From assembly GCA_009103225.1 (NCBI GenBank), contig RHPI01000863.1:1-60855 (forward strand): 60,855 nt of DNA, in the 5' to 3' direction. Position 1 is the stretch's first letter. Every line of letters begins with the position of its first letter. Positions 3,510 to 37,555 of this stretch are shown piece by piece. A program made the position numbers and the translations under genes. A model generated the notes under the pieces. The model worked only from the letters and a program-made list of their open reading frames with translations, had not been told where the DNA came from and made no database searches. This DNA is from Chlorokybus atmophyticus (Eukaryota > Plantae > Mesostigma and Chlorokybus algae).

Positions 3510-4036
<527 letters not shown>

Positions 4037-13399: not shown

Positions 13400-15889
13400 G
13401 GTTATGACGCTGACCGATTCACTCTGGCACGCAGCAACCACTGAACAGACAATGCCACGGCTCCTGCCCAAACATGTTGGTTTATATACCACATTCCAGC
13501 GCGACGTGGCCTGTTACGCGGCCTGAGGCTGGCTTAGCAACATCTGACAAAGTGGTGACTGTACTTGTATGAAGCAGCAATGGCGTATGGTAACTTGCCA
13601 CGCACTGCCGGATAGCTCTGACAGCTCAGCACAGATGTAACACCAGAGGTACTACGTAAGATCACGCGCGCCGTTTGGAGCCGCTCGCCTCTCGAGCCCA
13701 GAAGTCTAGTAAGCACATTTCAAATCGATCAACAAGTCTGCGTGGGTTGCTTACTATTCCGTCGGTCGTTGACAAGGTTCCGCACTGCTGCATGTTGCCA
13801 GAGCGCCATTTTGGCTTTGAGGCCAACACATCCAGCCGTCTAACTCGCTAGCTTGTTATGGCCAATGCTGCGTCTGTAGTCATGCGTAATGCTTTGAAGG
13901 CGTAACATAAACTGGTAATGGTTTTCTTTTCTTGCAGCTGCTACGAGCACATCCCATCCAATATAGCCATCATAAGCCATCATAGCAGAAATTCATATCG
14001 ATTAGTGTCGCCGCCTCAGACGTTCGATAATTGCAATTAAAACATCACATTAATACACAATCTTGTACATTATGCTGGAACCGACAGGTACCGTATATAC
14101 CAAAACACAGTCCCCCCCCCCCCCAAACACAGTCCCCCCCCAGCGTTTGTAAAGGGGGGGACAGAGTTTTGACTTAGGAGTCCCCCCTCCATTTGTAAGT
14201 TTACCTTTAAGGGGACTGTACCACATATATGGTATACATATTACACATATATGCATACATGTATGTCTGATATGTAGGTTACATGTATACTTATATTTTT
14301 AAAATGTATGATATATAATCGCATATCGGATATCGCAAATCTTATATAATGTATATGTATAAATATATACACACACACGTGATACAAAATGATATACCCA
14401 TGCATTGTGTACAAAATATACATATGCAACTATGTACACAAACATATGAGTTGCAACAATATGGTACAAATACTATTTATTTGTATACATACTGATAGTG
14501 TACGTATGTATCATTTGTGTTTATCATTAACAGCGTGATACATGTATATGCTTAAAATGCTAATAAAATTCCCTTTTTGTGGGCCATGGTGGCACAATTG
14601 TTGCTTATCTTATAGGCTGCGTCAGCCTGCTGCCGTTGCTGGCCTGCCGGCACCACTATAAGTTACGCTACTGACTGTGACCAATAGTGTCATGCCTATT
14701 GTCCTCGCATGCCAGCCTTCATCGAGCATGCTCACGTCAAGACCCTCCCCCGGCCTACCAGCCTACACGCGTCACGTCTCAGTGGTTAGGTTGTGAATCT
14801 AGACTAGCTCATGACCATAGCCTACAAAGGCATCGCGCGTAGCTGTTCAGTTGTACGGTTGGTTATTAATTTTGTTCTTTTAATTAGGAGGTGTTCGTGG
14901 GAATAGCCTCGATATGACTATTAGCTAATGTTCTAAACAGTCTTAATTTGACATGTATAAGAAGTTGAAGTGTTCACCAAACCAGCTAGTGACACTGTGA
15001 GTGAGAAAATGGAAAGAGCTAAGAAAGCTAAGAGCTTGTGAAGCAACTTTAACTACGAACACGCCATCCCACTTTTCAAGAATCCCCTCACCGTGTGAGG
15101 GATTCTTGAAAATTAGGAGCCTGTGCATGCTCTTGTGTAATGTGCTTGTTATTCCTGTGAAAATTGGTGTGCTTGGTTGCATCAGTTAGAGCATTGCATC
15201 CACATGTTGCTTACTCATTCACCTCACTTCACAAAGTGAGATATTCCCACTCATGCGAATAACTGTAAACAGCGCTACCTATAATAGTGCTTGTTGAGTC
15301 ATTATCACCCTCTTTGCTCAAGTGAGCAGCTGAGGATATTCCAACATCCATGGCAATAAGTAAGTTGGCTGGCTTGCCCTTTGCATAGGAATAGCCGCTA
15401 GAAGGTTTGAGACAACTTAAGTCAAGCGGTCCAAGCGCGAGAAGGTTCCAGGCGCGTCGGCGAGTCCGGATTTTGGAGACTTTCAGGCGCTGTAGTAGAA
15501 TGATTGTATCTTGGTGATAGTTGACTATTTGGCGTGTGCTATAGCTTAATGGAAAGCTGCTGAAAGCTAGCTACGTGGCGCAACTTGGAGTGCAGGTTAT
15601 GGTTGAGCGTGCTAGATGCAGTAGCTTTTGAAAGAGAAGCATGTGTAGCTGGCGGGTATTAAATCCGTGGACATGATGTTAATAGATGGTCTTGTATGGT
15701 CTCCTGACGCTGGTGTTGTAGCGTGCACTTGTGCATATGTATGCTTGTCATCGTCCATCTAAACAAGTCATGGGCCTACACATGCTTGTGTAGGTTGTAG
15801 TGAGTTGAATCGCGTGAGTAGGTGTGGATGATGTGTGGGTAGTAGGTTGCAAACTCTGCGAGTAGCAGAGGGGCAACGAAGGTTACAAG

Positions 15890-17028
15890 CATGGACGGCA
15901 TCAAGTACACAAACGACCCACTAGACGTTGACAACTACAACATCTGCAGTATGAAGATGGCGCTGCTATTAGCCCACAAAGAGTTGTGAAAGTATGTAGA
16001 CCCGAAGGAGACTGTTCCCGTTGCTGAGGCGAGTGTTTGTGCGTCTCAAGGGAGGAAGGCTCTGGCGCTGATTGGCTTGCACATTGCAGACCATCACTTG
16101 GTGTTGGTGAGGGAGTGCAAGGATGCGAAGGAGCTTTTTACAAAGCTTGAGAACCACTTCAAGGCGCGTAACATGGCGAGGAGATACAACTGAGGTAGGA
16201 GCTCAACTCGTTGCGCAAGGAGAGCGGAGAGGCCATTATCAAGTTCATGACACGCGCGAAGGCGTTGTGGAAAGACTTGCTCGGTGTTGGCCATGATCTC
16301 AAGGAGGTGGAGATATTTTGGGATGTGCTCATGTTTGCCCGAGGATTATAGGGTTGTTGTCACTATATTGGAGTCATCAACGGAGGACTTGACGTTGGAT
16401 GGGGTGACACCACGGTTTCTTCAAGAGGAGCAACGCTTGAGGAAAGAGGATGAAGTAGAGAACGGAGCTGAACTTGGTGGTGTGGCATTCGCGACTTTAT
16501 CGAGGCATGCACATCAGAAGAAGGGCGCTCGAGGCAGCAGCGTGCAGTGTTGAAACTGCGGGGAGCGTGGTCATGTAAGGAGCAAGTGTCCCAAGCTGAA
16601 GAGGACGAGGGCTGATGGTGAGGAGAGGGTGTGTGCGTTTCATGCATCTGATGAAGGAGCGGAGTATCCTGGGTGGGTGCTGGATTTGGGAGCAAAACAA
16701 GCATCTCAAAAGCGACAGGAGCAAGCTAATCAACCTCACTCTGTTAACTGAGCCAGTCACGGTGGACTTTGGGAACAAGAAGATGCTGGATGCTGTTGCC
16801 AAAGGAGACGCCAACCTCAGGTGCAAGGTGGGTGGTGCAGTTAAGAAGGTTGTGCTTACAGATGTACTGTATGTGCAAGGTGCATCTGCTAGTTTGTTCT
16901 CAGTACATGTAGCCTCAAGGGTTGGTGCGAAAGTTGTGTTCCATGCGGACAAGGTTAAGATAGTGCTTGGGGGCGTCACATATGTGGTAAGCATCAACAA
17001 GGGCGGACTCTACTACGTTGAGGAGGAC
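15890..17028 (+). pseudogene. Copia gag (with CCHC remnant) and aspartyl protease, copy 1
   Basis: NCGERGHVRSKC knuckle near 16555; PGWVLDLGAKQ protease site; VLYVQGASASLFSV and GGLYYV; multiple stops. Confidence 0.85.
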
Positions 17029-17696
17029 TGTAACGGTCAAGGCCAAGTTTCATGATTTTATAACCTTTTTGCCCATATATTGAGCACCACGTTTTCATGA
17101 CTTGTGCCAGATATTGGCGAGTTATGCGTCTGCTACGGATATCAACTGGGGGCCCAGGACCAGTCCGGAAGGTGCTAGAAAACGGAGGGCCAGTCGAGAA
17201 GGGCTCGACCAGATTTCTCAAAGGGCCTGGCGCCAAGTAGAATAACTTGACCATATGAGCACCTAATCAGGAGATCTTTGGTGCGTAAGAAAGGTTTAGA
17301 AGTATACTATAAGGTTATGCAATAACATCTTAGCCTTAGATTTTGTGTACCACGGGAATCGTCTACACAGTAGCATGTGCAGACTGGCAGGTATAAAAGT
17401 GACATTCTACAATGTGCAATACAACCTTTAGCTCCCTAGTTTCTTGTGTGCAAGCCTGGTGGTGGTTAGCAGGGATTGCTAGCCTGTGTCCATTGGTGTG
17501 TGCTTGCTTGTGTGACGATCCAAGGCGCTACACAAGTTGGTGTGTAGCTTCGAGCGCATGCGCGTGCGTACGCCAGTGACGGGGCGCGCGTGTGTGCTTG
17601 GCAGAGGGGGCAAGGTTCCGGTGTGAATACCGTGTCTTGGTGAGAGGGTTATTGATTGGACCAAGTCACAGGTGACAAGGCACAAGCACCGTTACA
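17029..17696 (+). repeat. G1 5' LTR
   Basis: Direct repeat of 33544-34205; TG...CA ends. Confidence 0.93.
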
Positions 17697-17779
17697 ATTG
17701 GTATCGGAGCACGGTGTCCAAAGGTGAGAGAGGAAGTGTGTGGGCGTTTACACTTTTCATTCGGAAGCGGAGTGTAGTG

Positions 17780-18715
17780 TGTCAATGGAGATGAAAGATG
17801 CTCGCATGGAAGAGCTTCAAGCTGCCATCTTAGCATTGAGGGAAGAGCTTCATTACACCCAAGCGGCGGCACAAGCACAACGCGAGGCGTATGAGCATGC
17901 GATGGCGCGTGTACAAGTTCCCATCGCATCAAGCTCGCACGTGCATGTGAAGGTGCCAAAGCCCAAGCCGTTCAAGGGTTAACGAATGGAGATGCAGTAG
18001 ACAAATGGATTTTTCAATTATTGTCTTTGGTTGAAGCTCGCGGACGTGCCCACGCATCTGCACGTAGAGGTTGCAGCGACGTTGCTTGAAGGTGCAGCAC
18101 TTGCATGGTGGAGACATTGTTGTGCGCGTGTTGCAAGTGGGTTGGCGCTGCCATTGACCACCATCGAAGAGTTGGCTCTGGAGATCAGGCATCTTTTTTT
18201 TCCGTGGAGAGTGTGAAGGCCGCACGCGATAAAATTGCAGCCCTTGTGCAAACGCGGTTGGTGACGGCGTACACGGCTTCGTGTCAGCGTTTGGTAATGT
18301 CCATATCCAACATGACCAAGGAAAAGCAGTTGGACATGTACACACGTGGTTTGAAACCTTCAAGACGCAAAGAAATGGAGCTACGAGACCCTGAAACTTT
18401 GGCGGAAGCTATTCGCATTGCGAAGCGTCTCGACGCGTTGTACTTCAAGTCTTCCGCAACAAACGCTGACTGGAGGCGTGGGAGCAAGCAAGAGTGGTGA
18501 TTAGCCTGGGGGAAGCTTTTAACATGCATGGACACGAAGGGAACTAAGTTCACAACTTGCAAAGGAAGGTGAAGCTGATTTGGGACCATCACCAATGGAG
18601 GTGGGTGCCGTACACACGCGTAACGATGTGGCGAAGCACGGTGAACATGGTGAGGTAGGTAGCAGCGTGCGCAAGAATTACGTGTGCGGTGCGACAGAAC
18701 ATTTCGCGTTCAATT
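17780..18715 (+). pseudogene. G1 gag, broken inside its CCHC knuckle by Y
   Basis: PKPKPFKG and ATLLEGAALAWWR motifs. YVCGATEHFAFN continues as CSKRR after 29785. Confidence 0.88.
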
Positions 18716-19319
18716 TGTCATGCCTATCGCCCGGGCATGCCAGTTGTCATCGGGCATGCCTACAGCGAGACCCTTGCCCGGCTTACCAGCATGGCAACCC
18801 GCGCGCGTCACTGACCAGTAGCTAGGTCATGTCTCTAGAGTAGCTCATGACCATAGCCTACATAGGCACCGCGCGTAGCTGTTCAGTTGTGAGTTCAGTT
18901 ATAAGTTGGGTTCTATATCGAGTGGGGATTTTCTGTGAATAGCCTCGATATGACCGTTAGCTTATGTTCTGGGCAGTCATGAGTTGACTTGTATAAGTAG
19001 GCACAGTGTTCACCGGATCAGCTGGTGACACTGTAAGTGAGAAAGCTAAGAGCTTGTGAAGCGACTTGAACTACGAAACACGCCGTCCCGGTTCCCCAGA
19101 ATCCCCTCACCGTGTGAGAGCCCGTACATGTTCTTGTGCACTGTGCTTGTCCTTGTTGTGAGCTTGGTGTACTTGGTCGCGGGGTGCTTGTTGGCATCAG
19201 TCAGGGCATAGCATCCACGTGTTGCTTGCTCATTCACCTCACTTAACAGTGTAATTTCTCTTCCACTCATTCAAAGAACTGTGTAAACAGCGCTACCTAT
19301 AGTAGTGGCTTGTTGACTT
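18716..19319 (+). repeat. Repeat A1
   Basis: Direct repeat of 28949-29554 (roughly 96% by hand count, approximate). Confidence 0.95.
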
Positions 19320-19529
19320 ACAGTGTCACCCTCTTTGCTCAAGTGAGTGTAGCTGCAGGCTGCACATGAGCATCGCAATCTGTAGTTGTACACATCGCAG
19401 TGCATTGTTGTCACCGTTATCGCATAGCGCGCACAAGCGCTAGTGTGTTGGGTGATAGCAGCACTGGAGATCCCATTGTAGAGCACAAACACTCTACCCT
19501 TCATCCACTTTCACCATCGCATCAGCTGT

Positions 19530-22500
19530 ATGAGCAGGCCCACCCCTTTCTCGCCAATAGAAGAAGGGAACCTCAACAGCTGGAGCCCAACCTCCAACCT
19601 TACCTACGAGCGCGCAAGTGAAGGGAGCGATTACCGTAGCAGCAGAGGCTCACGCCCCGTCTCCGGCTTCACCTCCTCTCACTCCACTCCTCGACAACGA
19701 GCATCTCCACCACCGTCGGACAGTGACGACGAGGAGATGGAGCCTTCCAGCTCAACCAACTCCCTACGCTTCTCCGGACGCCCTGGCACCACCTCACTTG
19801 ACGAGTTCATCATCAAGTTCCACTCCAAGATGCGGCAGCAAGCCCTCAAGAGCAAGGAATGGACAGATGAGGTATCGTTTCATGTGTCCGCTCAATACCT
19901 TGATCATGAAGCACATGATGTGTGGAAGTCCGTTGCTGAGTTGCACAAGATTGATGGCTATGGCGAATTGGCCAGCACAATATCCTCCACGTCACTGCAT
20001 AGCCCATCGGTTACTGTCCCTGTAGCAGCGGCCCCGCCAGCCTCAGTCACGGGTCTCACTCCAGCTGCAGCCATGGAGAAGGCAGAGAATGAAGAAGTTG
20101 AGGTGGTAGTGGCCTCATTGACTCCTGCAGAGATCGGAAGCAAGAAGGCCGAGCGCCGGATCAGGATACTCAACCGCACCGCTGCCATCATCGTGGAGCA
20201 ACCAGAGGAGCAGCAAGCTGCAGCATTGGAGATGGGTACGCCCCTGCTACCAACACCGAACTCGCGTGCTCCAGCGGGAGGCAATGTTTTCACCCTCGGC
20301 TCAGTGGCATTGCGTGCACCCGCGCACGGTGGGCGCGGCCATGTCGGACTCCCCGTTGAAGGACCTCTACGCCGCACTCCGGCGCACCTTCCCACCTTAA
20401 ACCAACAGCAAGGTAGAGGAGTTGAGGCGTTTTCGACAGAAGCCCAACGAGGACCCTCTCCGACTGTATTCATGGTTGGAAGGGTTGCTTAAAAACACTG
20501 ATTACAAGATTGTCAGCGAGGAGGCGGCAGCAGTGGTGTATGTGGCCGAGTTGGATCCCACCCTGAGTGAGTCAACGCGCCCTGACGCTGAACTACAGCA
20601 GGCCCCTCGGCTACACCCTCAAAGAAGCTTTCGAGACTGCATAAGCCATCCATAAGCGCGCAGTGTATAAAAAAGCGGTGCTGGACACCAACCGCAGTGC
20701 CTCGCGGCCTATGGCAGGCACAAGTGCAGAGCCTCTACGGCGGGACCGCAGCTGAGAGCCGCAAGGCATCCACAACAAGGATAAACGGTCAGCTCATGCT
20801 GCCTTTGTGGCTCCAGTGCTGTGCCACCGGTGTGGTCGACATGGCCACTACCAAAAGGAGTGCACTGAAGATTACGGCAACCTTGTGTGCGACTACTGCC
20901 ACAAGACGGGACACTTGGAGATAGTATGCTGGCTCAAGTTCCCTGAGCTGCGGCCCTCTATTGGCTACAACAACGGCAACAACGCTGTTGGCTACCGCGG
21001 CAACAACAACAACAACAACAACAACAGGGGCTACAACAACAGCAACCACGCTGGCGGCTACAACAACAACAACAACGCTGGTGGTCGCAACAATGGCAAC
21101 AACGCTGGTGGCCACAACCCCAGCAACAACAACAATGCCGGGGCCCGCAAGGAAGAAGCTGGCTACAGAGGGAAAAACCGCCCTCCACAGCACAAAGGAC
21201 CTGAGGGACGTCCTCGCGCTTGAGCTGCTGCTGTAAAGGCACCAACCAATCCACCAGCTGTTGACCAAGTGGCAGCCCTGATGGCGCGCGTGGCACAGCT
21301 GGAGGAGAACAAGGAGCAGGACTATCAAGCCTGCTATGCTGCTAGGTGGGCACTGATGGCACCAAAACGGGATAGGGACACTCCCACGCCGTCACGCGTA
21401 TAACCATCAAGACGTGCGCGCAGGGAAGCTGGCGCGTCGTCAACAGCGGCATCGTCGGACGCCACCTGTGGTGCTGCCTCGGCAGCCACAACCACTGCGG
21501 GGACGACGCCGTCGACGACACCGTCGGCGTCCACCCCGACCACGACAGCAGGTGCCAGCACTCTTGACACCACGCTGTCCCCGATGATGGAAAGCACCCA
21601 CGCCGCAACAACCATGGTCGTTGGGTTCGTGGGTGGTGAATCCACCACTCCTGCCTCCATTGACGCGACCACATCGGTCACAGCTGCTGCCACCCTCACA
21701 GCCGCCACCTCAGTAACAACGACTGCTGCCGGTGCCACCATCGCCTCCAGTAGTGCTGCTACACCCGCTGCACCATCTCCTTAGATCCGAACGGCACCGC
21801 CACCAGCACTTGACGTCACACAGCAAGTGCCACGCGGACCACAAGCAGAACGCGCCTGGGCGTCGATTATACGCCACGTGGAGCCCACCACCATTGCGTA
21901 CGGACCAGGGGGGCAACGCACCACGCGCGTGGCACGCGATGATCGCATCTTGCCCCTACCACCTCCAGAGTACCACACGCTGCCGGAACCCACACAACAG
22001 CAGCTGGAGGATGAAATCCTCGCCGGCACTGCACCAGAGATAAGGGATCGTCTGTTCGGGGTCACCTATCGGCGACCTGCAGTATTAGAGCTGGCCATTC
22101 AGTTTTTGGCATTACACGCACGATTGCAGGGCGCACCCAGTCCAACGCACCAACCCATGCCCGCTCAACAGATCGACTTCGAGCCCTCACCACTGGACCC
22201 ACTCGAACTCCAGCGCCACAAAATACAACACCTCGTGGTCACCATGTCGGACATCGCGCTGGGCACTGATCCCGCTCTCCGGGGGTTCACTCCAGGCAGC
22301 CGTTAAGAGCGGTTCTCTGCCCTCGAACAGGCACGTCGTTATCAGGTGGACCAAGCTGCCCAAGTGGACGCGCACCGACAGGCGTACGAAGCAGCACACG
22401 CCGTTATCGTACCAACTGTAGCTCCGGCAAATGTTGCCAGCGCCTCCACGGCGCTAACCACAAGGTACTCCACGGCAGTCGCCATCGAACAGCCAAGACA

Positions 22501-23050
22501 AGCAACTGCTGCAGACCAAGCGAGGGCGCTGACGCAACAATTGAGGGGGGTGATCGCCCCGTTGCTGCCTTCTTTGGTCGAAGACATACCTGAGGATCAA
22601 CGCGATGCAGGGCAAGGGTACCTCATCCCGCAAGGGGACACCACACAATGAGGAGGAGCTGGTATGGTGGGGGAGCAACAACTCCGTACCGCACTCATCC
22701 GGCAAGCAGTCATGTTGCACAGGCCTGAGGGCAACACATTAAGACAGATGATGGGGATGCGAGAGGGCAGCGCCGCTCGAGCCCATCTCGTGACATGGCT
22801 CGTTGCCAATCACCCTGCTGTCCCCCTGTTTGCCTTTGGCAACCGAGCATCATGGTTGGGGGCATTCGTTTGTTCGCTGCGACAAGCATACGACGAGGCT
22901 GCCACCACAGCCCCGGACTCGCTGGAGGGAGTGCAAGAGGCAATGCTGCGGCTGCCAGGGGTGGAAGCCGCACGATAACGGCGGCGCATCGCCATTGCTC
23001 ATAAGCTACACGCACAGCAGACTGACCTCCCACGCACCCTACGCGCGCGC
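19530..23050 (+). pseudogene. Y Gag region: capsid-like part, two CCHC knuckles, Asn/Gly-rich tract, long Pro/Thr/Ala-rich extension
   Basis: CHRCGRHGHYQKEC and CDYCHKTGHLEIVC in the 20807-21223 ORF. It is split by frameshifts and stops, and is homologous to the X and Z copies. Confidence 0.8.
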
Positions 23051-23659
23051 GCCATGACCGTGCTCGATGTGGGAGTGGTACAAGGAAGGTGGGATGCCTA
23101 CATGGCAGGGATCTTGCGAGTCCCCACCATCACTTACGACATGCGGCGACAGCTGCTACGCGCCGTATACCTGCAGCCCATGCCTCAATATTATCATTGG
23201 ACCGACACGGACACCGAGCCCACGGCCACGTGGGAAGGAACGTTGGTCAGAGAAGCGGCTCATGCTGTCCGATGGACGTACGCCGCGGAGCAAGCTGAAC
23301 GCGAGGCAGGCCCACAAGCACCTGATCCTCCGGGGTTTCCTCCACAGCTATTGGGTACACCTGCGGGCATGATTCCATCTTCGCAGAGGCAGCATCCACC
23401 TGCGCCGCCACCACAATCGGCGCCGAAACCTCCAGGACCGAGGCCCCCCGGTGTCTACCAACCACCACGACAAGGTCGGTTCGGCAGAGGGAGAGGGCAA
23501 GGAGGAGGTTCTCCGGACCCAGCAGGCAGAGGAGCTCTGGCTGCCATGCGCTCAGCACCCCCAGCTGAGAGAACTGAGGCAAAGGTGCAGACAGCTCGTA
23601 TTAAGAGGCTGCACATCAACGCCAATGCTGCCATGGTGGCCAACCAAGGTAAGCACGTT

Positions 23660-24050
23660 ACCATTAACGGCCTGGCACCCAAGCGAGTGATGTTGGACAC
23701 CGGAGCACAGCCTGTCATCATCGGGCGCTTCCTCGCGCGGTCCCTCGGCATAACCAGCTCCAACTTGGCGCCTTGCCCGTACGTGTTGGACACTGCCACA
23801 GGTAGCCGAGATAAGGCGATGGGAGTCACCAGGGAGGCCTTTTACATTCGGTTGACAGGGCTGGACCCCACCCACACAATCAAGATCGTCCAGCAATGTG
23901 TAGTCACCAATGCCGGCTCCTTCGACTTTCTGCTTGGGCAGGACTTCAACTTCCCTGTGGGCATGGGCCTCGACTGCTGGACAGAGCAGGCGTGGTTTCG
24001 GCCACATTGGGATGAGGATGACGGAGAGGTGCAGGGTTTTCTGCCTCTCG
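23660..24050 (+). pseudogene. Y retropepsin aspartyl protease
   Basis: RVMLDTGAQPVIIG (D at 23696) ... FDFLLGQDF. Confidence 0.88.
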
Positions 24051-24427
24051 AGTTGGTCTCGCGCACGCGCGCCCAGCGCAAAGTGGCTGCCGTGGCCACA
24101 CGCAGCCACGCCCGCACACGAGAGGCTGCAATGGCCACATACGACGGCGCTCGGACGCAAGTCGCTGATGGTGCCACGGCCCCGTGTTGAACCGTTGACT
24201 CCTCTCCCACCCTGTACAACAAGGAGCAAGAGGATGCTACCGTGGAAGTAGCATTGCAAGACCCAGCTGAACGGCGCTGGCGCGCACAGGTGAACGCACA
24301 CGTCTTGCTCAGCCATCCACTAATCACCACGCGCTTCCCCAACTACCGAAGCCACAACAAGGTGCAGGACCACCATATGGTGGCCACCGCAGTGGTGGAG
24401 TTCCACACCTTTCGCAGGCAACAGGGC

Positions 24428-25335
24428 ATCACAGTGTTGGAGCCGTTTGGAGGCATTAGCAGCGGTCTTGCCGCGGTCCTCACCACGGGTGTGAAGGTTG
24501 TCATATACTATTACTGCGACCCAGCCCCACACGCGCAAACGGTCCTCAAGCACCACTTACGCCAACTGCACGAAAGGTATTCACATTAACTACCCCTCTC
24601 AGCGTTGCAAGGCAGCCACAAGATATCTGGCTGATCACTGAAGATCACCTACTGTCCCTCGGCAACGTCGACCTATTAATCGCTGGGTGGAAATGCCAAG
24701 GGCACTCCAGGGTAGGCAAGGGGCAAGGCCTCGAACACCCTCGCTCAGGGCTGTTTTGGGAGCTGATGAGAATCATCCACCTCCTTCAACACCACTAAAT
24801 CTTCAGACCCCTGGGGTACGTCATCGAAAATGTGCATTCAGAGGACGACAAGCGTCTGCACGTGGCCTCCAGCTACCGACATGTTTGCTCCAATATGGGG
24901 CACCCACTCAAGGTGAACGCTGCACGACATGGCTCGCGCGCACATCGTGTACGTGCCAAACGGACAAACCTGGCCGCCGTGGAGGAACTCATGACCGCGG
25001 AATACACGCGCAGCGCTCGGCCGCGCAACCTGCTGGTCAATGACATCCTGGACCCCGGCCGTAAAGCACAACCTGTCCTCCGTCATAACCACAACCACTT
25101 TTACCCGTGCAATCAGCCCGGTCAGCCCCGTCGCGCACTCCCCACATTGGTGTCCTACCCGGGCTCCTACGCATTCCGGAACGGTGGAGACGGGATGGTG
25201 TTTGATGCGACCACCAACAGGCTGGAGGAACCCAACGCACGCGAACGCGCCATGGGATTCTTCCCCAACAGCATCACGGGTTCATCGCTGACAGATTGTC
25301 AGCAATGCCAGCTGCTTGGCCGCGCCATGGACTAG
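24428..25335 (+). pseudogene. C5-cytosine DNA methyltransferase domain (DNMT3-like) within pol
   Basis: Motif I VLEPFGGISSG; II YYYCD; III QDI; IV DLLIAGWKCQGHS (Cys 24694); V GLEHPRSGLF; VI YVIENV (24826); VIII HGSRAHRVRAKRTN; IX ERAMGF; X QLLGRAMD. Contains two TAA stops and a small frameshifting deletion. Confidence 0.9.
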
Positions 25336-25341
25336 AACAAC

Positions 25342-26950
25342 ATGGTATGGCTGCTGGAGCTGAGCTTCGCGTTGCAGGACCGCCACGTGTTCTTCGAAGA
25401 TCTCGAACACTTGGCTGGGGGGTGGGCTGATCGCGTAGCCGACACCAAGGCAGCTCACACAGCCCTCGAGGTGGTCCACATGGAGGAGCAAGCAGCAGTG
25501 ACAGTGGAGGACATTCCCGTGGTTGCCAATGCAACCTCCTGGGACCATGCCATTGGCCCGTTGGCCACAGAAGGCACTCGAGAGAAGCTGGAGGCTCTCC
25601 TCAACAAATGGAGGAGCCAATTCAGCTTCAATGTGAAGGAATTGGGTACATGTTCAGTGTACCAGATGGACATCGAGCTGGTGGACACTGAGCCGGTGTT
25701 CCGGCGGCAATACAGGCTCTCCAAGTTGGAAGAGGACCTGGTAAAACAGAGATGTAAGGCGCTGCTTGATGCAGGCCTTATCGAAGTGTCCACATCAGAC
25801 TTCGCAGCAGCAACCGTCATGCCACTGAAGAAGGATTCAGCAGGCAACTGGACAGAGCGACGCATGTGTGGCGACTATCGCCCCCTCAACAACAAGACCA
25901 AGCAAGACAGGTACCCCATGCCCACAGCAGAGGGTATCTTTGATGATGTGGGAGGCTGCACAAACTTCAGCATCCTGGACATGCGTCAAGGGTACAACCA
26001 AATCGCCATCAAGGACGAGGATAAGCACAAGACCTCCTTCTGGGGCAACCGACAGTTGTACCAATGGAAGGTGATGCCGTTCGGGCTGAATGCCCCCGCC
26101 AAGTTTCAACGCGTCATGGACAAGGCGTTGAAGGGGATGGACTGCGCGCGGTGTTACATCGATGACATCCTCATCTTCAGCCGCAGCAACGAGGAGCATC
26201 TTCAGCACATCGAAGCAGTGCTGGAACGACTCAAGGGAGTGGGGATGACCGTACACCCCGACAAGTGTACCTTCTTCACCCACAAGGTGCCGTACTTAGG
26301 GCACATCATTGTGCCCCATGGTGTGTATGTGCAGCAGGCAAAAGTAGAGGCTCTGGCAGCTATCCCCGCCCCGACAGACCTTACACGTCTGCGCGCTTTC
26401 TTGGGACTTGCCAACTACTATCGTCGGTTCGTGAAGGACTTCGCGAAGATCGCAAGGCCCCTCAACGAGCTACTGAAGAAGGAGGTGGAGTTCGCATGGA
26501 AGGAGCCGCAACAGCAGGCCTTCGAGGAGCTGAAGAGCAGGCTCACCACCGCTCCCATCCTTCAACGTCCGGACTACGCCAAGCTTTTCACCCTTCACAC
26601 CGACTGGAGCAAGCTGGGGATGGGAGTGGTGCTGGTGCAGCACGATGAGAACAAGAAGGAGCGGGTGGTGTCATACGCCAGCTGAAGCAATAACAGCGCC
26701 GAGGCCAACTACAGCAGCTACGAAGGGGAGTGCCTCGCTGCAGTGTGGGCCATCTCCTTCTTCTGACCTTTTCTCTTTGGTCGGCAGTTCCAACCGATCA
26801 TCACCCCTCAAGTGGCTAATGACCAACCAACATCTGACAGGGAAACTTGCTCGATGGGCCCTGCTGTTGCAGGAATACGACTTCGAGATCGACCACCGCG
26901 CTGGCCTCACCAACCAAGACGCCGATGGCCTCAGTCGCAACCCTCCCCTA
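25342..26950 (+). pseudogene. Y reverse transcriptase and RNase H (Ty3/Gypsy type)
   Basis: RMCGDYRPLNNKT, FSILDMRQGYNQI, MPFGL, YIDD at 26155-26166, FLGLANYYRRFV, LHTDWSKLGMG, YEGECLAAVWA, KLARWALLLQEYDFEIDHRAG. In frame with the DNMT C-terminal part across a TAG. Confidence 0.95.
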
Positions 26951-27379
26951 GGCACCAACGACGCAACTGGAGCTCGGCATGAGCTCGTCCCTGCAGCAAC
27001 AACCCCCACCATGGCAACCATGTTTGCTGCTGCCGCGTTGCGCTCAAGGCGCAAGACCAACACCACGGCCTCAGCAATGGCAGAGGAAATTCCTGCTCTT
27101 GATCCTACCGGCCCTGCGGCAACCACACCTTTGAGAGACGCCCACGCAGCCGACATTAACGTCGATAACACAGAGTTGGCGCCCACTGACACCAGGCAAG
27201 ACATATGGCAGGACAAGCCATCATTCTCCTTTCTTCAAATTGGTCAGCTTCCCTCCGGCATGAGCGCCCGAGAGAAGGACCGAGTCAACCAATGCACCTG
27301 TCACTATCGATAGGCAGGTGACAAGTTGTATCGCCGCTTCCACGACGAAGACAAGGAAGTGCCGACACCGGTCACGCGC

Positions 27380-28665
27380 GAGGGCATCATCACTGCCCTC
27401 CACACGGAGCTTGGGCACTTCGGTGTCAAGCATACCGGCAGCCTAGTTAGGGCGCAATAATGGTGGTATGGGCTGTCCAAACAGGTGCAGGGGTTTGTCA
27501 GTCGCTGCCAGCAGTGTGACATGGTATGTGCCAGCCTCAACACGCGTAGCGCCACCTTGCACCCACTCCCCATCTCCGGTCTCTTTTACCGATGGGGGCT
27601 CGATATCTTGGGGGACTTGGCACCCTCAGCGCGTGCCAACCGATACATCCTGGTCATAATCGAGCAGTTCTCCAAATGGGTGGAGCTGGTACCGTTACCC
27701 AACAAGAGCAGCAGGGGGGTGTCTCAAACCTTCCTCTCTCTCACGTTCTCAGCCGATTTGGCAGCTGTGCCAAGGTCATCACTGACCAAGGTACTGAGTT
27801 CAGAGGGGAATTCGACACCCTCTTGGACAAATGTTACATCGACCACCGCCGTACCTCGCGTGATCACCCTCAAGCCGACGGTCTCGCCGAGCGTACAGTG
27901 CAGACCATCAAGAAGGCACTCCGCAAGTACGTGCTGGAGTACGAGAAGAACACTTGGGATGACCACCTCCTGTGGGTGGCCCTCGGATATCGATTGTCAA
28001 AGCAGGCGGCTTTGCGGGAGTACAGCCCGTACTACCTGCTGTTCGGGCGACCACCATTGCTCCCCTTCCGTGCGCAGCAGGAGGTGGATCGCGTCGTGAA
28101 CAACCTCGACGACCCTGACTGGATGCACCACGACATCACCATGCGCGCCGCGCTTTTCGAGCGCACCATCCCCATGGCCTTCAACAACCTGCGCATCGCG
28201 CAGCATCGCGACACGCTGCGCTACGAGCGCGTATGCAGCGGCTTCTACAAGGAGCGCCAACGGCGGTTCCAAGCGGGGGACTTTGCCTATCGCATGGCAG
28301 CCACCAAAGACACGCTTGACACCTCCGTAGGCCGCACCGTCTACAAGGTACTCAAAGTGTACCCCACAGGGGTGCTGGACCTCCTTGGTCAAAACGGAGA
28401 GAGGTTGAAGGACAACATGGTGAACTGTGCGCCATGTCACCTTCCTTACGTAGCCGGCTTCGGGCGTATCCAGCACCCTCGTCCCGCGCGCAGCACACGC
28501 TGTGAACGCTGCGGCAGCGCCGGCGACGACGCACTCATGATGCTCTGCGATGGCTGCAACAAGGGCCTGCATTGCTACTGCCTGGAGCCACCTTTGGACG
28601 CGATACCTATGGAGGAGTATTGGTGCGACGATTGCCGTACCAACGGCCCTCCTCACTTGCGCTAG
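27380..28665 (+). pseudogene. Y DDE integrase (HHCC plus core) with C-terminal PHD finger
   Basis: LHTELGHFG...CQQC; WGLDILG; VITDQGTEF; HPQADGLAERTVQTIK. PHD is CERC..MLCDGCNKGLHCYCLEPPLDAIPMEEYWCDDC at 28501-28635. Confidence 0.93.
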
Positions 28666-28702
28666 CAGCTGAGCTCTGGAGCTGGAACCTCCCCCAGAGC
28701 CC

Positions 28703-28710
28703 AGGGGGGG
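28703..28710 (+). promoter_or_regulatory. Putative polypurine tract of Y
   Basis: AGGGGGGG lies immediately before repeat B1; the equivalent G-run is in copy Z at 37556-37564 (minus). Confidence 0.6.
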
Positions 28711-28946
28711 TGGCTTGTTGACTTTGTGTGCTACAGCACAGCATGTACACCAGGGAGAACACCGACTCCACCTGCCCGTACTACCCAGCAGCAGCAGACC
28801 AGCTGCACAAAGCACTTGTCACCATGAGGGTTGGGGTCATCTTTTTGCTGCGCGTTACACAAGTGGCGCAGCAGCATGTCCAGCAAGCATGGCTGTCCAT
28901 GCAGCTGTCCGAGACAGCACTCCCCTCGACTCCCCTCGACCCGACA
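28710..28946 (+). repeat. Repeat B1
   Basis: Direct repeat of 29540-29781; ends CCCGACA. Confidence 0.95.
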
Positions 28947-28948
28947 GC

Positions 28949-29554
28949 TGTCATGCCTATCGCCCACGCATGCCAGTCGTCATCGGGCATGCCTACAGCG
29001 AGACCCTCGTCCGGCTTACAAGCATGGCAACCCGCGCGCGCCACTGTCCAGTAGCTAGGTCATGTCTCTAGAGTAGCTCATGACCATAGCCTACATAGGC
29101 ACCGCGCGTAGCTGTTCGGTTGTGAGTTCAGTTATAAGTTGGGTTCTATATCGAGTGGGGATTTCCTGTGGAAATAGCCTCAATATGACCGTTAGCTTAT
29201 GTTCTGGACAGTCATGAGTTGACTTGTATAAGTAGGCACAGTGTTCACCGGATCAGTTGGTGACACTGTAAGTGAGAAAGCTAAGAGCTTGTGAAGCGGC
29301 TTGAACTACGAAACACGCCGTCCCGGTTCCCCAGAATCCCCTCACCGTGTGAAAGCCTGTGCATGTTCTTGTGCACTGTGCTTGTCCTTGTTGTGAGCTT
29401 GGTGTACTTGGTCGCGGGGTGCTTGTTGGCATCAGTCAGGGCATAGCATCCACGTGTTGCGTGCTCATTCACCTCACTTAACAGTGTAATTTCTCTTCCA
29501 CGCATGCAAAGAACTGTGTAAACAGCGCTACCTATAGTAGTGGCTTGTTGACTT
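28949..29554 (+). repeat. Repeat A2
   Basis: Direct repeat of A1; starts TGTCATGCC. Confidence 0.95.
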
Positions 29555-29781
29555 TGTGTGCTACAGCACAGCATGTACACTAGGGAGAACACCGACTCCA
29601 CCTGCCCGTACTACCCAGCAACAGCAGACCAGCTGCACAAAGCACTTGTCACCATGAGGGTTGGGGTCATCTTTTGTTTTTGCTGCGCGTTACACAGGTG
29701 GCGCAGCAGCATGTCCAGCAAGCATGGCTGTCCATGCAGCTGTCTGAGACAGCATGACCCTCGACTCCCCTCGACCCGACA
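29540..29781 (+). repeat. Repeat B2 (element terminus)
   Basis: Direct repeat of B1; followed by TSD AATT. Confidence 0.95.
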
Positions 29782-32700
29782 AATTGCTCGAAGCGGCGCA
29801 CGCAAACGTCCGCATCAGCTGGCAACACATATCACGCACGACGCATCAACGCAATGGAGGAAGATGGCGTGGAGGAACAGGAAAATGACTTCCCCCAGTA
29901 GGTGAGGAGGCTACTGCTGGGGATGAGGGGGAGCCTCACGCACAAATAAAAACTGTGACATCGCAACCAAGGTAGAAAATAAAGGTGGCTATGAACACGC
30001 GCATCTTGGTAAGTTATGCGAGGAGGCAACAAATTACGTTGAGCTTCTAGCATGCACTTGCTATGACCGAGGACAATGGAGGAAGTGCAACCTTGTGGTT
30101 GATAGTGGAGTAAACAGCAACTTCGTGAGTGAGGAGGTTGCACGGCGCTACAGTTGGCTTTCAAAATTACGAGGAGGAGAAGTGAAACTCGCTGTTGGGG
30201 AACCACCCTGTGGAGGTACCGGTGCTGCGTTTTTTACCACGGAGTTGTGTGTTCATGTTCACATGGGGAAGAAGGAGAATATGCGTTTCTGCTGCATCAC
30301 CCTACGGAACGGGTTTCATGAAATTTTGAGACTACCGTGGCTGTGGCAACATAACCCATCTATCGATTGGAGGAAGCGTGTGCTTATTATAAAGGAAAAC
30401 GATGGAGAGTCCATTCAAGGTCTACGCGTGTGCTCCATCGAAGTGGAAGACCACTCTTGCAAGGAAAGCAAGAAGGGCTTTGTCATAGCTGCATCGGACG
30501 TCGCTAAGGCAAGTATGCGCACGTGTATTGAGCACCTGCAAGGGGATACAAGCACCAAAAAGGCACGGCACGCTCAATCGGGTATGAGCATTGCTTCAAT
30601 TTCCTATGTGCAATTGAGGAGGCTGCAATCCCCTCAAAAAGCAAAGGCTGCATGGTTGTGCGTTGTGCGTCTGAGCATTAAAGTCAGCACCGCTGAGTGA
30701 CTGCATTGAAACAGCCACAATGGCTAACCCCGAGGTGTGCAAACTTGTTCAGGACTACAAGATATCATGGTGGACAGACTTTCCGTTGGTCTGCCACCCT
30801 CACAAAGCATTGATCACCGTGTGAAGTTGATTGAGGGCGTGCACAAGCCACCCTACAGGCCTGTATATAAGTTGTCACCTCTAGAGGAGGCCGCGAAGCA
30901 GATAGCGGATCTTCCAAAGAGTGGGTACATCTGGCCAAGTAAGTCACCTTATGGTGCACCAATACTGTTCATGCGGAAGAACGGGAGCCTGCATATATGC
31001 ATTAACTACCAAGCGCTCAACACAATTAAAAAGAAGAACTACTTTCCACTACCGCGTATTGACGAGTTGCTGAAGCAGCTACAAGGTGCGCAGTACGTTA
31101 CCACACTTGATCTTGCGGGAGGTTATCATCAGATCCGCATCGCACCTGAGGTGGAGAAGACAGCGTGCGACGCGCGCTATGGACATTATGAGTGGTTACT
31201 GTTGTTGTTTGGGCTTACGAACGCGCTAGCGACATTTTAGGCGTCGATGAACAGCGTTTTTGCTGACTTGCTAGGTAAGGGAGTCCTCGTGTACCTCGAC
31301 AACATTCTAGTGTGCTCGAAGACGAAGGATGAGCATGTGAGTCGTCTACGGCGCGTGTTGCAGCGTTTACGCGAGCACAAGTTGTACGCTAAGCTACAGA
31401 AGTGCAAGTCTTTGCTACGCGAGGTGGAGTACCTGGGCCACATTGTGTCACAAGAAGGAATTAAGGTTGACCCCAATAAATTGCAAGTGGTGCGCAAATG
31501 GTCTGCCCCGACCAACGTGAAGGAGGTAATGTCGTTCTTGGGCCTTGCGGGGTATTATCGCAAGTATATCATAGGATTTTCGTGCATTGCGGCCCCTTTA
31601 ACCACCCTACTCAAGAAAGGGAAGTCTTGGAGCTGGTCTACAAAGGAAGAGCATGCATTTACTGCGTTCAAGAAAGCGTTGGGGCAGCCGTCTTGGCTCA
31701 CCCCGTTATGGACAAACCTTTCATTTTAGCTTGTGACGCATACGACACAGCTGTGGGAGCTGTGTTACAGCAAGACCAAGGCATGGGTCTTCAACCTGTA
31801 GCGTTCTTTAGTTGAAAACTGAGTGGAGCAGAGCTGGACTACCTTGTGCACTAGAAAGAGCTATTGGCGCAAGTGATGGCGCTACGACAATGGCGATGCT
31901 TTCTTTAGGGCAAAAGGTTCGTGCTAAAGACGGACCATTCCCCATTGAGGTACTTACAGACACAACCACGTCTAAGTCGGAAATAAGCGCGGTGGTTGGA
32001 GTTCTTTCAACTTTTTAATTTTGAGATCAAGTACAAGCCCGATACGTCTAATGGTGTGGCCGATGTGCTAAGCCGGTTGAATGAGATTGAAGCACTCGCT
32101 CAAGTGCAACCGGAGTGGGCCGACCAGATCTGACAAGCGTTTGCGAAGACACAGAAGGTAGGAGAGTCTTGCAAGGCATGGAGAGCACAGCAACGGACAC
32201 AAGTGAACATTGAACAAAGCAACACGGCCTATTATGACATCATGGCCGCTTGTACATCCCCAATGTTGCACATATACACGTTCAACTTTCAAAGGAAGCT
32301 CGTGGCGTACCCATTGCTGGCCACTAAGGAGTGGAGAGGACGTTGGCAAGTTTAAAACAACGCTTTTATTGGCGGGAGATGCATCGTGATGTATGCGATT
32401 ATGTGGCGTTGTGCGACGCATGTCAAAGGGTGAAAGCAAGCAACCCAAAGCCAAGTGGGTTGCTACAACCTCTTCCCGAGCCTTTGTCCAAGTGGGAGCA
32501 GGTTACTATGGACTTTATTACGGGGCTGCCGAAGACAACAGAAGGGTACGACGCAATACTCGTGTCCGTAGACAAAACCAGCAAACTAGTACGCTTGGCA
32601 CCGTGCTGTGAGTCTTGTACGGCACCAGAGGCAGCAAGCTTGTTTTTTAAGTATTGAAAGCGATTGTGATCCCCGCTTCACAAGTAAGTTTTGGGAGGCG

Positions 32701-33515
32701 CTGCATAGTGCACTGGGTACTACCTTAAAGTCTAGCACGGCTTTCCACCTGCAAACTGCTGGGTAAGCGGAGCGAGCCAATCGTGTGATTGAAGATATGT
32801 TGCGCTGCTACGTGAACGCACGGCAAGACAATTGGGCGGAGTTGCTGAAAGTGGTGGGTTTTGCCAACAACAACCACACCAACGCAAGCACGGGTGTCAC
32901 CCCCTTTCTCATGAACTACGGCCAACACAGGCTGACACCGCTGACGCCGTGAACACCGCGAGGAAGTGACGTTGATGTGAAAGCAGTATTCTTACAACGT
33001 GTGCGGACATCAACAAGGCAGCGAGAGAGGCGCTATAGGTGGCACAAAATAGGCAAAAACAGTACGCAAACGCGCATCGTCGACATGTCACGTTTCGTGA
33101 AGGCGACAAGGTGTTGCTATTTGCAAGGAACTTACAGGTGCGTGCTAGAGTTTGCAAGTTAAGTGAGCGCTGGCTTGGGCCATTTTAAGTCATCAAAGTG
33201 GTTTCGGACGTGGCGTACAAGTTGCAATGCCCGACTCTATGCACGTCCACCCTGTCTTGCACATATCCCTTCTAAAATCATATTGAGGACATCCACCATT
33301 GCGGCCACCGCTTGAGTTGGCTACGGAAGGTCATATGGAATACGAAGTGGAGGACATATTGGGAGAAAATGATGCACAACGTGCGCAAATATTTGGCGAA
33401 GTGGAAAGGCTACATGATGCATGAAGCCACTTGGGAACTGGAGGAGCACTTGGCAAATGCACAACATATCCTACAACAGTATTTGCAACGACTAGAGAAT
33501 CCTCGAGAGCTTTGA
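29782..33515 (+). pseudogene. G1 pol: protease, RT, RNase H, integrase, chromodomain (degenerate)
   Basis: MVDSGVNSNFVS; SPYGAPILF, PLPRIDELL, YLDNILV; ACDAYDTAVGAVL; WEQVTMDFITGLP; chromodomain KYLAKWKGY..EATWELEEHL. Many stops. Confidence 0.92.
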
Positions 33516-33543
33516 GGACAAAGCTTACCTAGGGGGGCAGGAG

Positions 33544-34205
33544 TGTAACAGTCGAGGCCAAGTTTTACGTTTTTAAGACCTTTTTTGGCCCATTTATCGA
33601 GCACCGCATTTTCATGACTTGTGGCAGATATCGGTGAGTTATAAGTCTGCCGCGGATATCGACCGGGGCCCCAGGACCAGTCTGGAAGGTGCTAGAAAAC
33701 GGAGGGCCAGTCGAGAAGGGCTCGACCCGATTTCTCAAAGGGCCTGGCGCCAAGTAGTGTAACTTGACCATATGAGCATCTAATCAGGAGATCTTTGGTG
33801 CGTAAGAAAGGTCTAGAAGTATATTACAAGGTTTTGCAACATCTTAGCATCAAGTTTTGTGTAGCACGGGAATCGTTTAGATAGTAGCATGTGCTGACTG
33901 GTAGGTATAAAAGCGACATTCTACTATGTGCAATACAACCTTTAGCTCCCTAATTTCTTGTGTGCTGGTGATGGTTAGCAGGGGTTGCTAGCGTGTGTCC
34001 ACTGGTGTGTGCTTGCTTGTGTGACGATCCAAGGCGCTGCACAAGTTTGTGTGTAGCTTTGAGCGCATGCGCGTGCATACGCGAGTGGCGAGGCGCGCGT
34101 GTGTGCTTGGCAGAGGGGGCAAGGTTCCGGTGTGAATACCGTGTCTTGGTGAGAGGGTTATTGATTGGACCAACTCACAGGTGACACGGCACGAGCACCG
34201 TTACA
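33544..34205 (+). repeat. G1 3' LTR
   Basis: Direct repeat of 17029-17696. Confidence 0.93.
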
Positions 34206-37320: not shown

Positions 37321-37555
37321 NNNNNNNNNNNNNNNNNNNNNNNNNNNNNNNNNNNNNNNNNNNNNNNNNNNNNNNNNNNNNNNNNNNNNNNNNNNNNNNN
37401 NNNNNNNNNNNNNNNNNNNNNNNNNNNNNNNNNNNNNNNNNNNNNNNNNNNNNNNNNNNNNNNNNNNNNNNNNNNNNNNNNNNNNNNNNNNNNNNNNNNN
37501 NNNNNNNNNNNNNNNNNNNNNNNNNNNNNNNNNNNNNNNNNNNNNNNNNNNNNNN
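37321..37555. other. Assembly gap (N run)
   Basis: Ns. Confidence 0.99.

Follow-up and report, generated by a model that had tools for sequence, protein, structure and literature searches.

The window analysed here, a 60,855-nt stretch of the Chlorokybus atmophyticus contig RHPI01000863.1, is a nest of transposable elements. One of these, on the plus strand at positions 18716-29781, is an inactive copy of a retrotransposon from the streptophyte 'Gypsy-DNMT3' clade of the Ty3/gypsy group, with a coding order of gag, protease, DNA methyltransferase (DNMT), reverse transcriptase (RT), RNase H, DDE integrase and PHD finger. The element is not bounded by two identical long terminal repeats (LTRs). 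Its left end consists of a repeat A only (A1), and its right end reads B-GC-A-B (B1, a spacer of exactly GC at 28947-28948, A2 and B2). The two A repeats are 96.4% identical over 606 columns, and the two B repeats display 95.0% identity, including a 5-nt indel. The end of A and the start of B overlap by a 15-nt word, termed x (GTGGCTTGTTGACTT), which is found at 19305-19319, the end of A1, at 28710-28724, the start of B1, and once only at the joint between A2 and B2 (29540-29554). The termini of the element are TGTC and GACA (TG...CA ends), AATT is present on both sides, and in silico deletion of the element together with one AATT generates a single open frame across the insertion site. Taking the identity of the element and its layout together, it is highly probable that the locus contains a single insertion with an A-internal-B-A-B arrangement.

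The original prediction for this DNA had described the same four repeats, a single insertion flanked by the AATT duplication, and TG...CA ends, and all of these hold in the repeat alignments, in the restored flanking frame and in the terminal bases. It had also proposed that removal of the element restores a host zinc knuckle (CxxC-ATE-H-FAFN-C). The frame does close, but the restored motif reads N-Y-V-C-GATE-H-FAFN-C, that is NxxC-x4-H-x4-C, a knuckle that lacks its first cysteine, and the frame is not that of a host gene. What the insertion interrupts is the gag of another Ty3/gypsy element (pol at 30848-32943), in which this knuckle is degenerate.

The coding span of the element is occupied throughout, from gag to the PHD finger. 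The copy is dead, as the reading frame contains several frame changes and stops, one frame change lying inside the integrase core. A search of a representative library with the RT retrieved mostly long multi-domain polyproteins and one useful intact relative, P0311, a metagenomic polyprotein of 2188 amino acids with the same domain order, which aligns to the element from protease to integrase and contains the Pfam domains zf-CCHC, Asp_protease_2, DNA_methylase, RVT_1, RT_RNaseH, Integrase_H2C2 and rve. The methyltransferase, which lies between protease and RT, is recognized in the window copy only through homology with P0311, in which the PF00145 domain spans residues 978-1226; a Pfam scan of the broken methyltransferase open reading frames (ORFs) of the element gave no match. 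Window positions 24616-26811, comprising the DNMT-RT-RNase H part, are 44% identical to P0311 residues 1038-1741. The closest solved relatives of the RT are the Ty3 RT (4OL8, 3.9e-57) and the Ty3 Gag-Pol structure 7Q5B. The catalytic residues of the integrase are readable in the ORFs as D (GLDILG), D (ITDQG) and E (GLAER), and P0014, a close relative of this integrase, matches the integrases of Ty3 and prototype foamy virus (PFV) among solved structures. No tyrosine recombinase (PF00589) was found in 11 scanned plus-strand ORFs, a subset of those in the element, in the intact P0311 or in the called genes of the related contig L002. These data bear out the proposal that the enzyme is a Ty3-type DDE integrase and that a tyrosine recombinase is lacking. 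The pol order protease-RT-RNase H-integrase with an RT of the Ty3 lineage is that of Ty3/gypsy elements, as are a DDE integrase with an HHCC zinc domain, TG...CA ends and a duplication in the range of 4-6 bp.

The predicted signals of reverse transcription lie at the inner borders of A1 and B1. A polypurine tract (PPT) with a terminal run of G lies directly 5' of B1, and such a G-run PPT adjoins B1, with a constant PPT/B1 boundary, in more than 30 related copies. At the other side of the internal region, the first base after A1 is the first base of a primer-binding site (PBS) that is complementary to a site inside A, ∼30 nt past a TATA-like box. The same spacing between TATA-like box and predicted start is evident in a Closterium copy (L003) and in the moss-associated loci described below. 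These features suggest a self-priming layout of the Tf1 type, the transcript start being predicted from the position of the TATA box. The complementarity is 11 nt in the window element and 13 nt in the Closterium copy, values matched by 3 and 0 of 2000 shuffles, respectively, and extends to 12-14 nt in the moss-associated loci and 16-17 nt in Sphagnum fallax L088. In all four lineages it begins at the first base after A1, and the sequences involved are mutually unrelated. In the predicted fold of the window RNA from R through U5 to the PBS, both the minimum free energy and the centroid structures close on the self-priming helix. A PBS of the tRNA type (TGG...) was not seen directly after A1 in the window element or in the Closterium copy.

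Because the PPT lies directly before B1 and the self-priming PBS directly after A1, the repeat duplicated by reverse transcription would be B+GC+A and not A+B. Indeed, the positions of PPT and PBS exclude A+B as the LTR of reverse transcription in every lineage examined. A plus-strand primer ahead of A2 was also considered and excluded; B is purine-rich in Closterium and pyrimidine-rich in the window element. The repeat bounded by PPT and PBS is permuted relative to the boundaries of the insertion: A1 is the B+GC+A LTR minus its first part, and B2 is an additional copy of that first part. The view that the LTR (B+A) is permuted, with the integrase attachment (att) sites inside it, is thus upheld by the adjoining PPT and PBS here and in three other lineages.

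The two att sites meet at the B1-A2 junction. An 11-nt core of this junction (GACAGCTGTCA) is invariant in nine elements with otherwise unrelated flanks, and in decayed copies the only changes to the palindrome are transitions. As integrated, the element has the TG of A as its left terminus and the CA of B as its right terminus, between 4-bp duplications, and its integrase would thus recognize the two halves of this invariant palindrome (GACA and TGTCA, separated by GC), inside the repeat of reverse transcription. In contrast to the palindrome and the PPT/B1 boundary, the A2/B2 joint is variable among copies. In a first family from the moss-associated loci 0-4 nt matching the start of the PBS (A, AT, ATT or ATTC) stand between the end of A and B, and at other joints of the same family the first five bases of B have been lost. 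In a second family B2 begins 0, 2 or 4 bases in, and overall the losses from the start of B at these joints amount to 2-5 nt. By analogy, the primer-site remnants and small losses resemble the junctions of 2-LTR circles, and the simplest reading is that the A2/B2 joint is formed anew at each transposition by the joining of full-length cDNA termini.

Protein identity and a scan of metagenomes were used to gather relatives of the element. The organization in which a G-run PPT is followed by B1, GC, A2, B2 and flank is shared by a complete copy in Closterium sp. NIES-65 (L003, duplication ACTC), a complete copy in a chromosome record of Sphagnum fallax (L088, duplication ATCT), two ENA/JGI contigs (L002 and L005) and ∼20 distinct moss-associated metagenome loci. 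A Klebsormidium nitens contig (L007) contains the 3' part, with a G-run PPT, B1, the GC spacer and an A2 that starts with TGTCA; 77 nt of this contig are shared with the window at ∼80% identity. Perfect 4-bp duplications were also identified at L081 (ATAA) and at L050 (CCAA), a copy with a single B, bringing the number of copies with perfect duplications to five with that of the window, while at L059 three of the four positions match. The survey of family copies for A left ends, B right ends and 4-bp duplications, and of related genomes for the same layout, which had been suggested as a check, gave a positive outcome on both counts, and the sequences collected show that the layout is a trait of the clade rather than an accident. 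The PHD finger is present in most relatives, and a methyltransferase in nearly all those with enough upstream sequence. Among 5.8 billion proteins none was more than ∼58% identical to the RT or integrase of the element.

Variation within the clade was also observed. In L069, L078, L084 and L085 the methyltransferase follows the RT rather than lying between protease and RT, so the domain order is not fixed. Copies in which A, the internal region, the PPT and a single B are followed directly by flank were found at L033, L034, L037, L038, L047, L048, L050, L053/L056, L079 and L083. In L046/L051 A2 begins only ∼75 nt before the start of B2, indicating an internally shortened B-A-B region. Two further candidates were uninformative: Calypogeia L001 is an integrase fragment embedded in unrelated tandem repeats, and Marchantia L089 retains a PPT with neither palindrome nor repeats. 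The features of the window element are listed in Table 1.

Table 1. Features of the split-repeat Ty3/gypsy element and its insertion site (window coordinates).
Feature	Position	Strand	Remarks
Left target-site duplication, AATT	18712-18715	+	Identical bases at 29782-29785; frame closes once one copy is removed
A1, 5' repeat	18716-19319	+	U3 (3' part), R and U5 of the reverse-transcription LTR; first bases TGTCATGCC; matches A2
TATA-like box (TATAAGTA)	18992-18999	+	∼30 nt upstream of predicted RNA start; consensus match only
Predicted first 11 nt of transcript (GGTGACACTGT), self-primer	19024-19034	+	Perfect complement of 19320-19330
x, copy 1	19305-19319	+	Pairs with RNA nt 12-26 in predicted self-priming helix
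PBS, self-priming (Tf1-like) type	19320-19330	+	Starts at first base after A1
gag region	19530-21223	+	CCHC zinc knuckle 20822-20869, then Asn-rich repeat; PF00098 on ORF 20807-21223; AAC-rich repeats 20963-21150
Aspartic protease	23657-23947	+	PF13650, E=2.8e-9; aligns to P0311 protease
C5 cytosine methyltransferase remnant (Dnmt3-like)	24242-25335	+	Frame-broken; homology to P0311
Reverse transcriptase	25855-26310	+	PF00078, E=4.5e-30
RNase H	26497-26944	+	PF17919, E=1.8e-18 (RT/RNase H span 25855-26944)
Integrase (HHCC zinc domain and DDE core)	27200-28227	+	Frame change near 27715-27751; aligns to P0311 residues 1837-2178 (PF17921, PF00665)
PHD finger, integrase C-terminus	28501-28635	+	PF00628, E=7e-9; stop codon 28663-28665
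PPT with terminal G-run	28696-28709	+	Directly 5' of B1
B1	28710-28946	+	5' part of U3, LTR start as defined by reverse transcription; x at start, GACA at end
Putative internal integrase (att) site, palindrome GACA-GC-TGTC	28943-28952		End of B plus start of A, 2-nt spacer
A2, second A copy	28949-29554	+	From repeat comparison with A1
B2, second B copy	29540-29781	+	GACA end at host boundary; A2/B2 joint within x (29540-29554)
Right target-site duplication, AATT	29782-29785	+	Matches left copy

A route by which such copies may arise can be proposed. Transcription would start inside A, ∼30 nt past the TATA box, and reverse transcription would yield B-GC-A-PBS-internal-PPT-B-GC-A, the outer termini of which (the U5 end and the U3 start) would become joined to create the A2/B2 joint, either in a circle of the 2-LTR type or by host end-joining once the integrase has cut and inserted one palindrome. 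The integrase would cut after CA on both strands at the palindrome of the upstream repeat, where the 2-nt spacer would result in two recessed CA-3'OH ends with 2-nt 5' overhangs, a strand-transfer substrate of the type presented by processed retroviral ends. Insertion with a 4-bp stagger would then produce A-PBS-internal-PPT-B-GC-A-joint-B, and only a copy of this form would be expected to yield an RNA with R at both ends and a full B-GC-A. This route of joining and cutting, reconstructed from integrated copies, is on balance probable. The broader proposition, that the DDE integrase of the clade regularly uses a single LTR-internal palindrome on cDNA with joined termini, so that insertion resembles that of insertion sequence circles and A2/B2 is a fossil joint in every copy, is plausible but falls a little short of being probable.

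Several points weigh against the joining-and-cutting route. The TATA box, the transcription start and the poly(A) site are predictions, and the steps of joining and cutting are all deduced from integrated copies. Random opening of a two-palindrome circle should also give mirror-image copies (A-joint-B-GC-A-PBS-internal-PPT-B), yet none was found among the eight copies with a readable 5' end, a small sample. A blunt join of the termini of the window cDNA would leave two copies of x, whereas one is present; joining in this lineage would therefore have been guided by homology or have occurred by template switching. Finally, a single B stands at the 3' end in about one-third of the moss-associated copies. 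These could derive from recombination between B1 and B2, from a second integration route, from a circle with one repeat, or from a linear form cut at both sites.

As the main rival model, it is conceivable that reverse transcriptase alone adds the extra B. The plus strand, on reaching the end of A, would switch to the start of B and recopy it, guided by the 15-nt x in the window lineage and by an end-to-end jump in the others, and the integrase would cut the palindromes of the longer linear DNA without any ligation or circle. The presence of x at both predicted cDNA termini and once only at the joint fits such a switch, an asymmetric polymerase step explains why the mirror-image layout is unseen, and joints with 0-4 primer-site bases are compatible with a jump made after some of the RNA primer had been copied into the plus strand. 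Relatives, however, lack any overlap between the end of A and the start of B, and several joints have lost bases from the start of B, which is more like end-joining than templated switching. In addition, no feature of the template would stop synthesis at the end of B, and cutting at the palindromes is still needed. We consider this explanation unlikely, though deserving of weight. Less likely again is the possibility that the short form, A-PBS-internal-PPT-B, is the primary product, made from ordinary linear cDNA in which the integrase uses the palindrome of the left repeat for its A half and that of the right repeat for its B half, and that B-A-B is a rarer by-product and the sole form competent for transcription. 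Single-B copies are common (∼10 distinct loci), and at least one, L050, has a perfect 4-bp duplication. However, B-A-B copies outnumber them ∼2 to 1 in an unselected sample, recombination between B1 and B2 is also expected to generate single-B copies, and a main product unable to be recopied could hardly have persisted from Klebsormidium and Closterium to Sphagnum.

The layout might also not be a property of the element at all, and reflect misassembly, a nested or tandem solo repeat beside a truncated copy, or a DIRS-type element served by a tyrosine recombinase in trans. The window comes from a draft scaffold that contains an N gap and a run of 525 G, and the arrangement is identical to that of PAT and Ngaro elements. 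Misassembly is, nevertheless, an improbable source of the layout because the duplicated parts diverge by 4-5%, as expected for copies of equal age, and because the layout reappears in assemblies obtained independently from other organisms; the objection that B2 was misplaced by the assembler, raised when the element was first noted, consequently loses its force. The GC spacer and invariant palindrome likewise recur in these assemblies, one of which is at chromosome level, the five copies with perfect 4-bp duplications have TG...CA ends, and no tyrosine recombinase domain was found in the scanned ORFs of the element or in intact relatives. Taken as a group, these explanations are extremely improbable.

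The remainder of the window contains other elements and repeats. The gag-like frame interrupted by the studied element belongs to a different Ty3/gypsy element (17698-18715 and 29786-33500), with a paralogue at 43178-45012; its RT, RNase H and integrase (30848-32943) are ∼34% identical to P0311. An older relative of the studied element, E2 (14688-15326 and 35110-37123), is 75-80% identical to it and is split by a ∼20-kb block that contains it. The A repeat of E2 (14688-15297) aligns from the same first base as A1, TGTCATGCC. A minus-strand relative, E4, runs from ∼52190 down to 37130, and an N gap (37321-37554) stands exactly after its PPT; past the gap lie a second PPT-like word, an x-like word and B'. 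A B-A-B region may have been collapsed or skipped at this point during assembly. As E2 is without its 3' end and the 3' end of E4 is broken by the gap, neither was usable for 3' comparison. An Asn-rich coding repeat of 27-nt AAC-rich units past the gag knuckle is kept in three diverged copies (20963-21150, 36045-36191 and ∼50680-50780). An LTR-like block of ∼440 bp is repeated at 15331-15771, 34695-35107, 45127-45566 and 47530-47733, with associated internal sequence at 15373-17151 and 45170-46940 (92% identical), and a 670-bp stretch occurs twice, at 17024-17697 before the studied element and at 33539-34206 after it. The poly(G) run at 3511-4035 (525 G without interruption, 100% identity) is most likely a sequencing or assembly artefact and not biology. 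At 54759-55430 there is a weak match to a tnp2 (CACTA-type) transposase (PF02992, E=8e-4, below the Pfam cut-off), and a 426-residue ORF at 55885-57165 had no homologue at all.

LTR retrotransposons and retroviruses are thought to integrate linear DNA in which the tips of the LTRs are the integrase sites, and circles are seen as dead ends. The elements described here suggest that in a whole clade, from streptophyte algae (Klebsormidium and Closterium) to peat moss, the integrase sites are inside the LTR and an end-to-end joint is contained in each copy. If the proposed route is correct, the clade is a natural case of an integrase using a built-in junction of the circle type, and the role of joined or circular forms as integration substrates becomes directly testable in culturable algae and mosses. 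In practical terms, programs that find LTRs by looking for two identical terminal repeats will annotate such elements wrongly or call them DIRS.

The original prediction knew of no described Ty3 family of this kind, a claim that does not stand, as the layout was noted, without explanation, in 2018. The legend of Fig. 4c in de Mendoza et al. 2018 (PMC5890265) states that KnitGypsy-Dnmt3 of K. nitens has repeats arranged as in DIRS and the domains of Gypsy, a combination also found in the window element, and the K. nitens copy L007 displays the same PPT-B1-GC-A2 junction. Both have a Dnmt3-type methyltransferase within a Ty3/gypsy pol and A-coding-B-A-B repeats. In RT and integrase, by contrast, the identity between the window copy and any protein found in K. 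nitens is only ∼50%, and the copy therefore represents another family. The 2018 paper gives no target-site duplication, PBS or PPT analysis, or mechanism. A preprint from 2026 cites streptophyte 'Gypsy-DNMT3' as previously described, a full-text literature search for the name KnitGypsy-Dnmt3 returned the 2018 paper only, and, judged by title and abstract, none of eight papers listed for 'split direct repeats' with Gypsy and integrase deals with a Gypsy element of this layout. Four points seem to be absent from the searchable literature: target-site duplications combined with an invariant internal palindrome, the definition of B+GC+A by the PPT and self-priming PBS, the variable joint, and the occurrence of the layout as far afield as Closterium and Sphagnum.

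The order A1-internal-B1-A2-B2 is that of DIRS elements (PAT, Ngaro and TOC1-like), in which, as here, the B1-A2 junction holds the information to rebuild both ends. DIRS elements, however, have a tyrosine recombinase, an RT of another lineage and no target-site duplication, whereas the window element, which shares the split direct repeats and neither the recombinase nor the duplication-free integration, has a DDE integrase, TG...CA ends, 4-bp duplications and a Ty3-like RT. In Tf1/sushi elements the PBS pairs with the 5' end of the transcript of the element itself, not with a tRNA, and the same is predicted for the Tcn1 elements of mosses and club-mosses, whose hosts are likewise non-seed plants (Neumann et al. 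2019, PMC6317226). Those elements differ in that their LTRs are of the ordinary identical kind, with integrase sites as the boundaries, and in having a chromodomain, while the window clade has a PHD finger and a DNMT. The closest parallels to the palindrome itself are circle junctions. In 2-LTR circles, the palindrome formed where the two LTRs meet is a cleavage site for the integrases of PFV and human immunodeficiency virus type 1 (PMC1180852, PMC1905944, PMC4372172). In the retroviral junction, as in the clade, two integrase end sites stand head to head across a short spacer, and cleavage at this one site can regenerate both reactive ends. In the circle junctions of IS3-family insertion sequences the transposase end sites are similarly abutted head to head with a short spacer. 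Ligation is required to form the retroviral junction, which has a spacer of 4 nt and is of marginal use in integration. In the window clade, by contrast, the junction is encoded by the element, has a 2-nt spacer and is apparently the regular site of integration, and the heterogeneous joint of the ligation type is retained in the copy.

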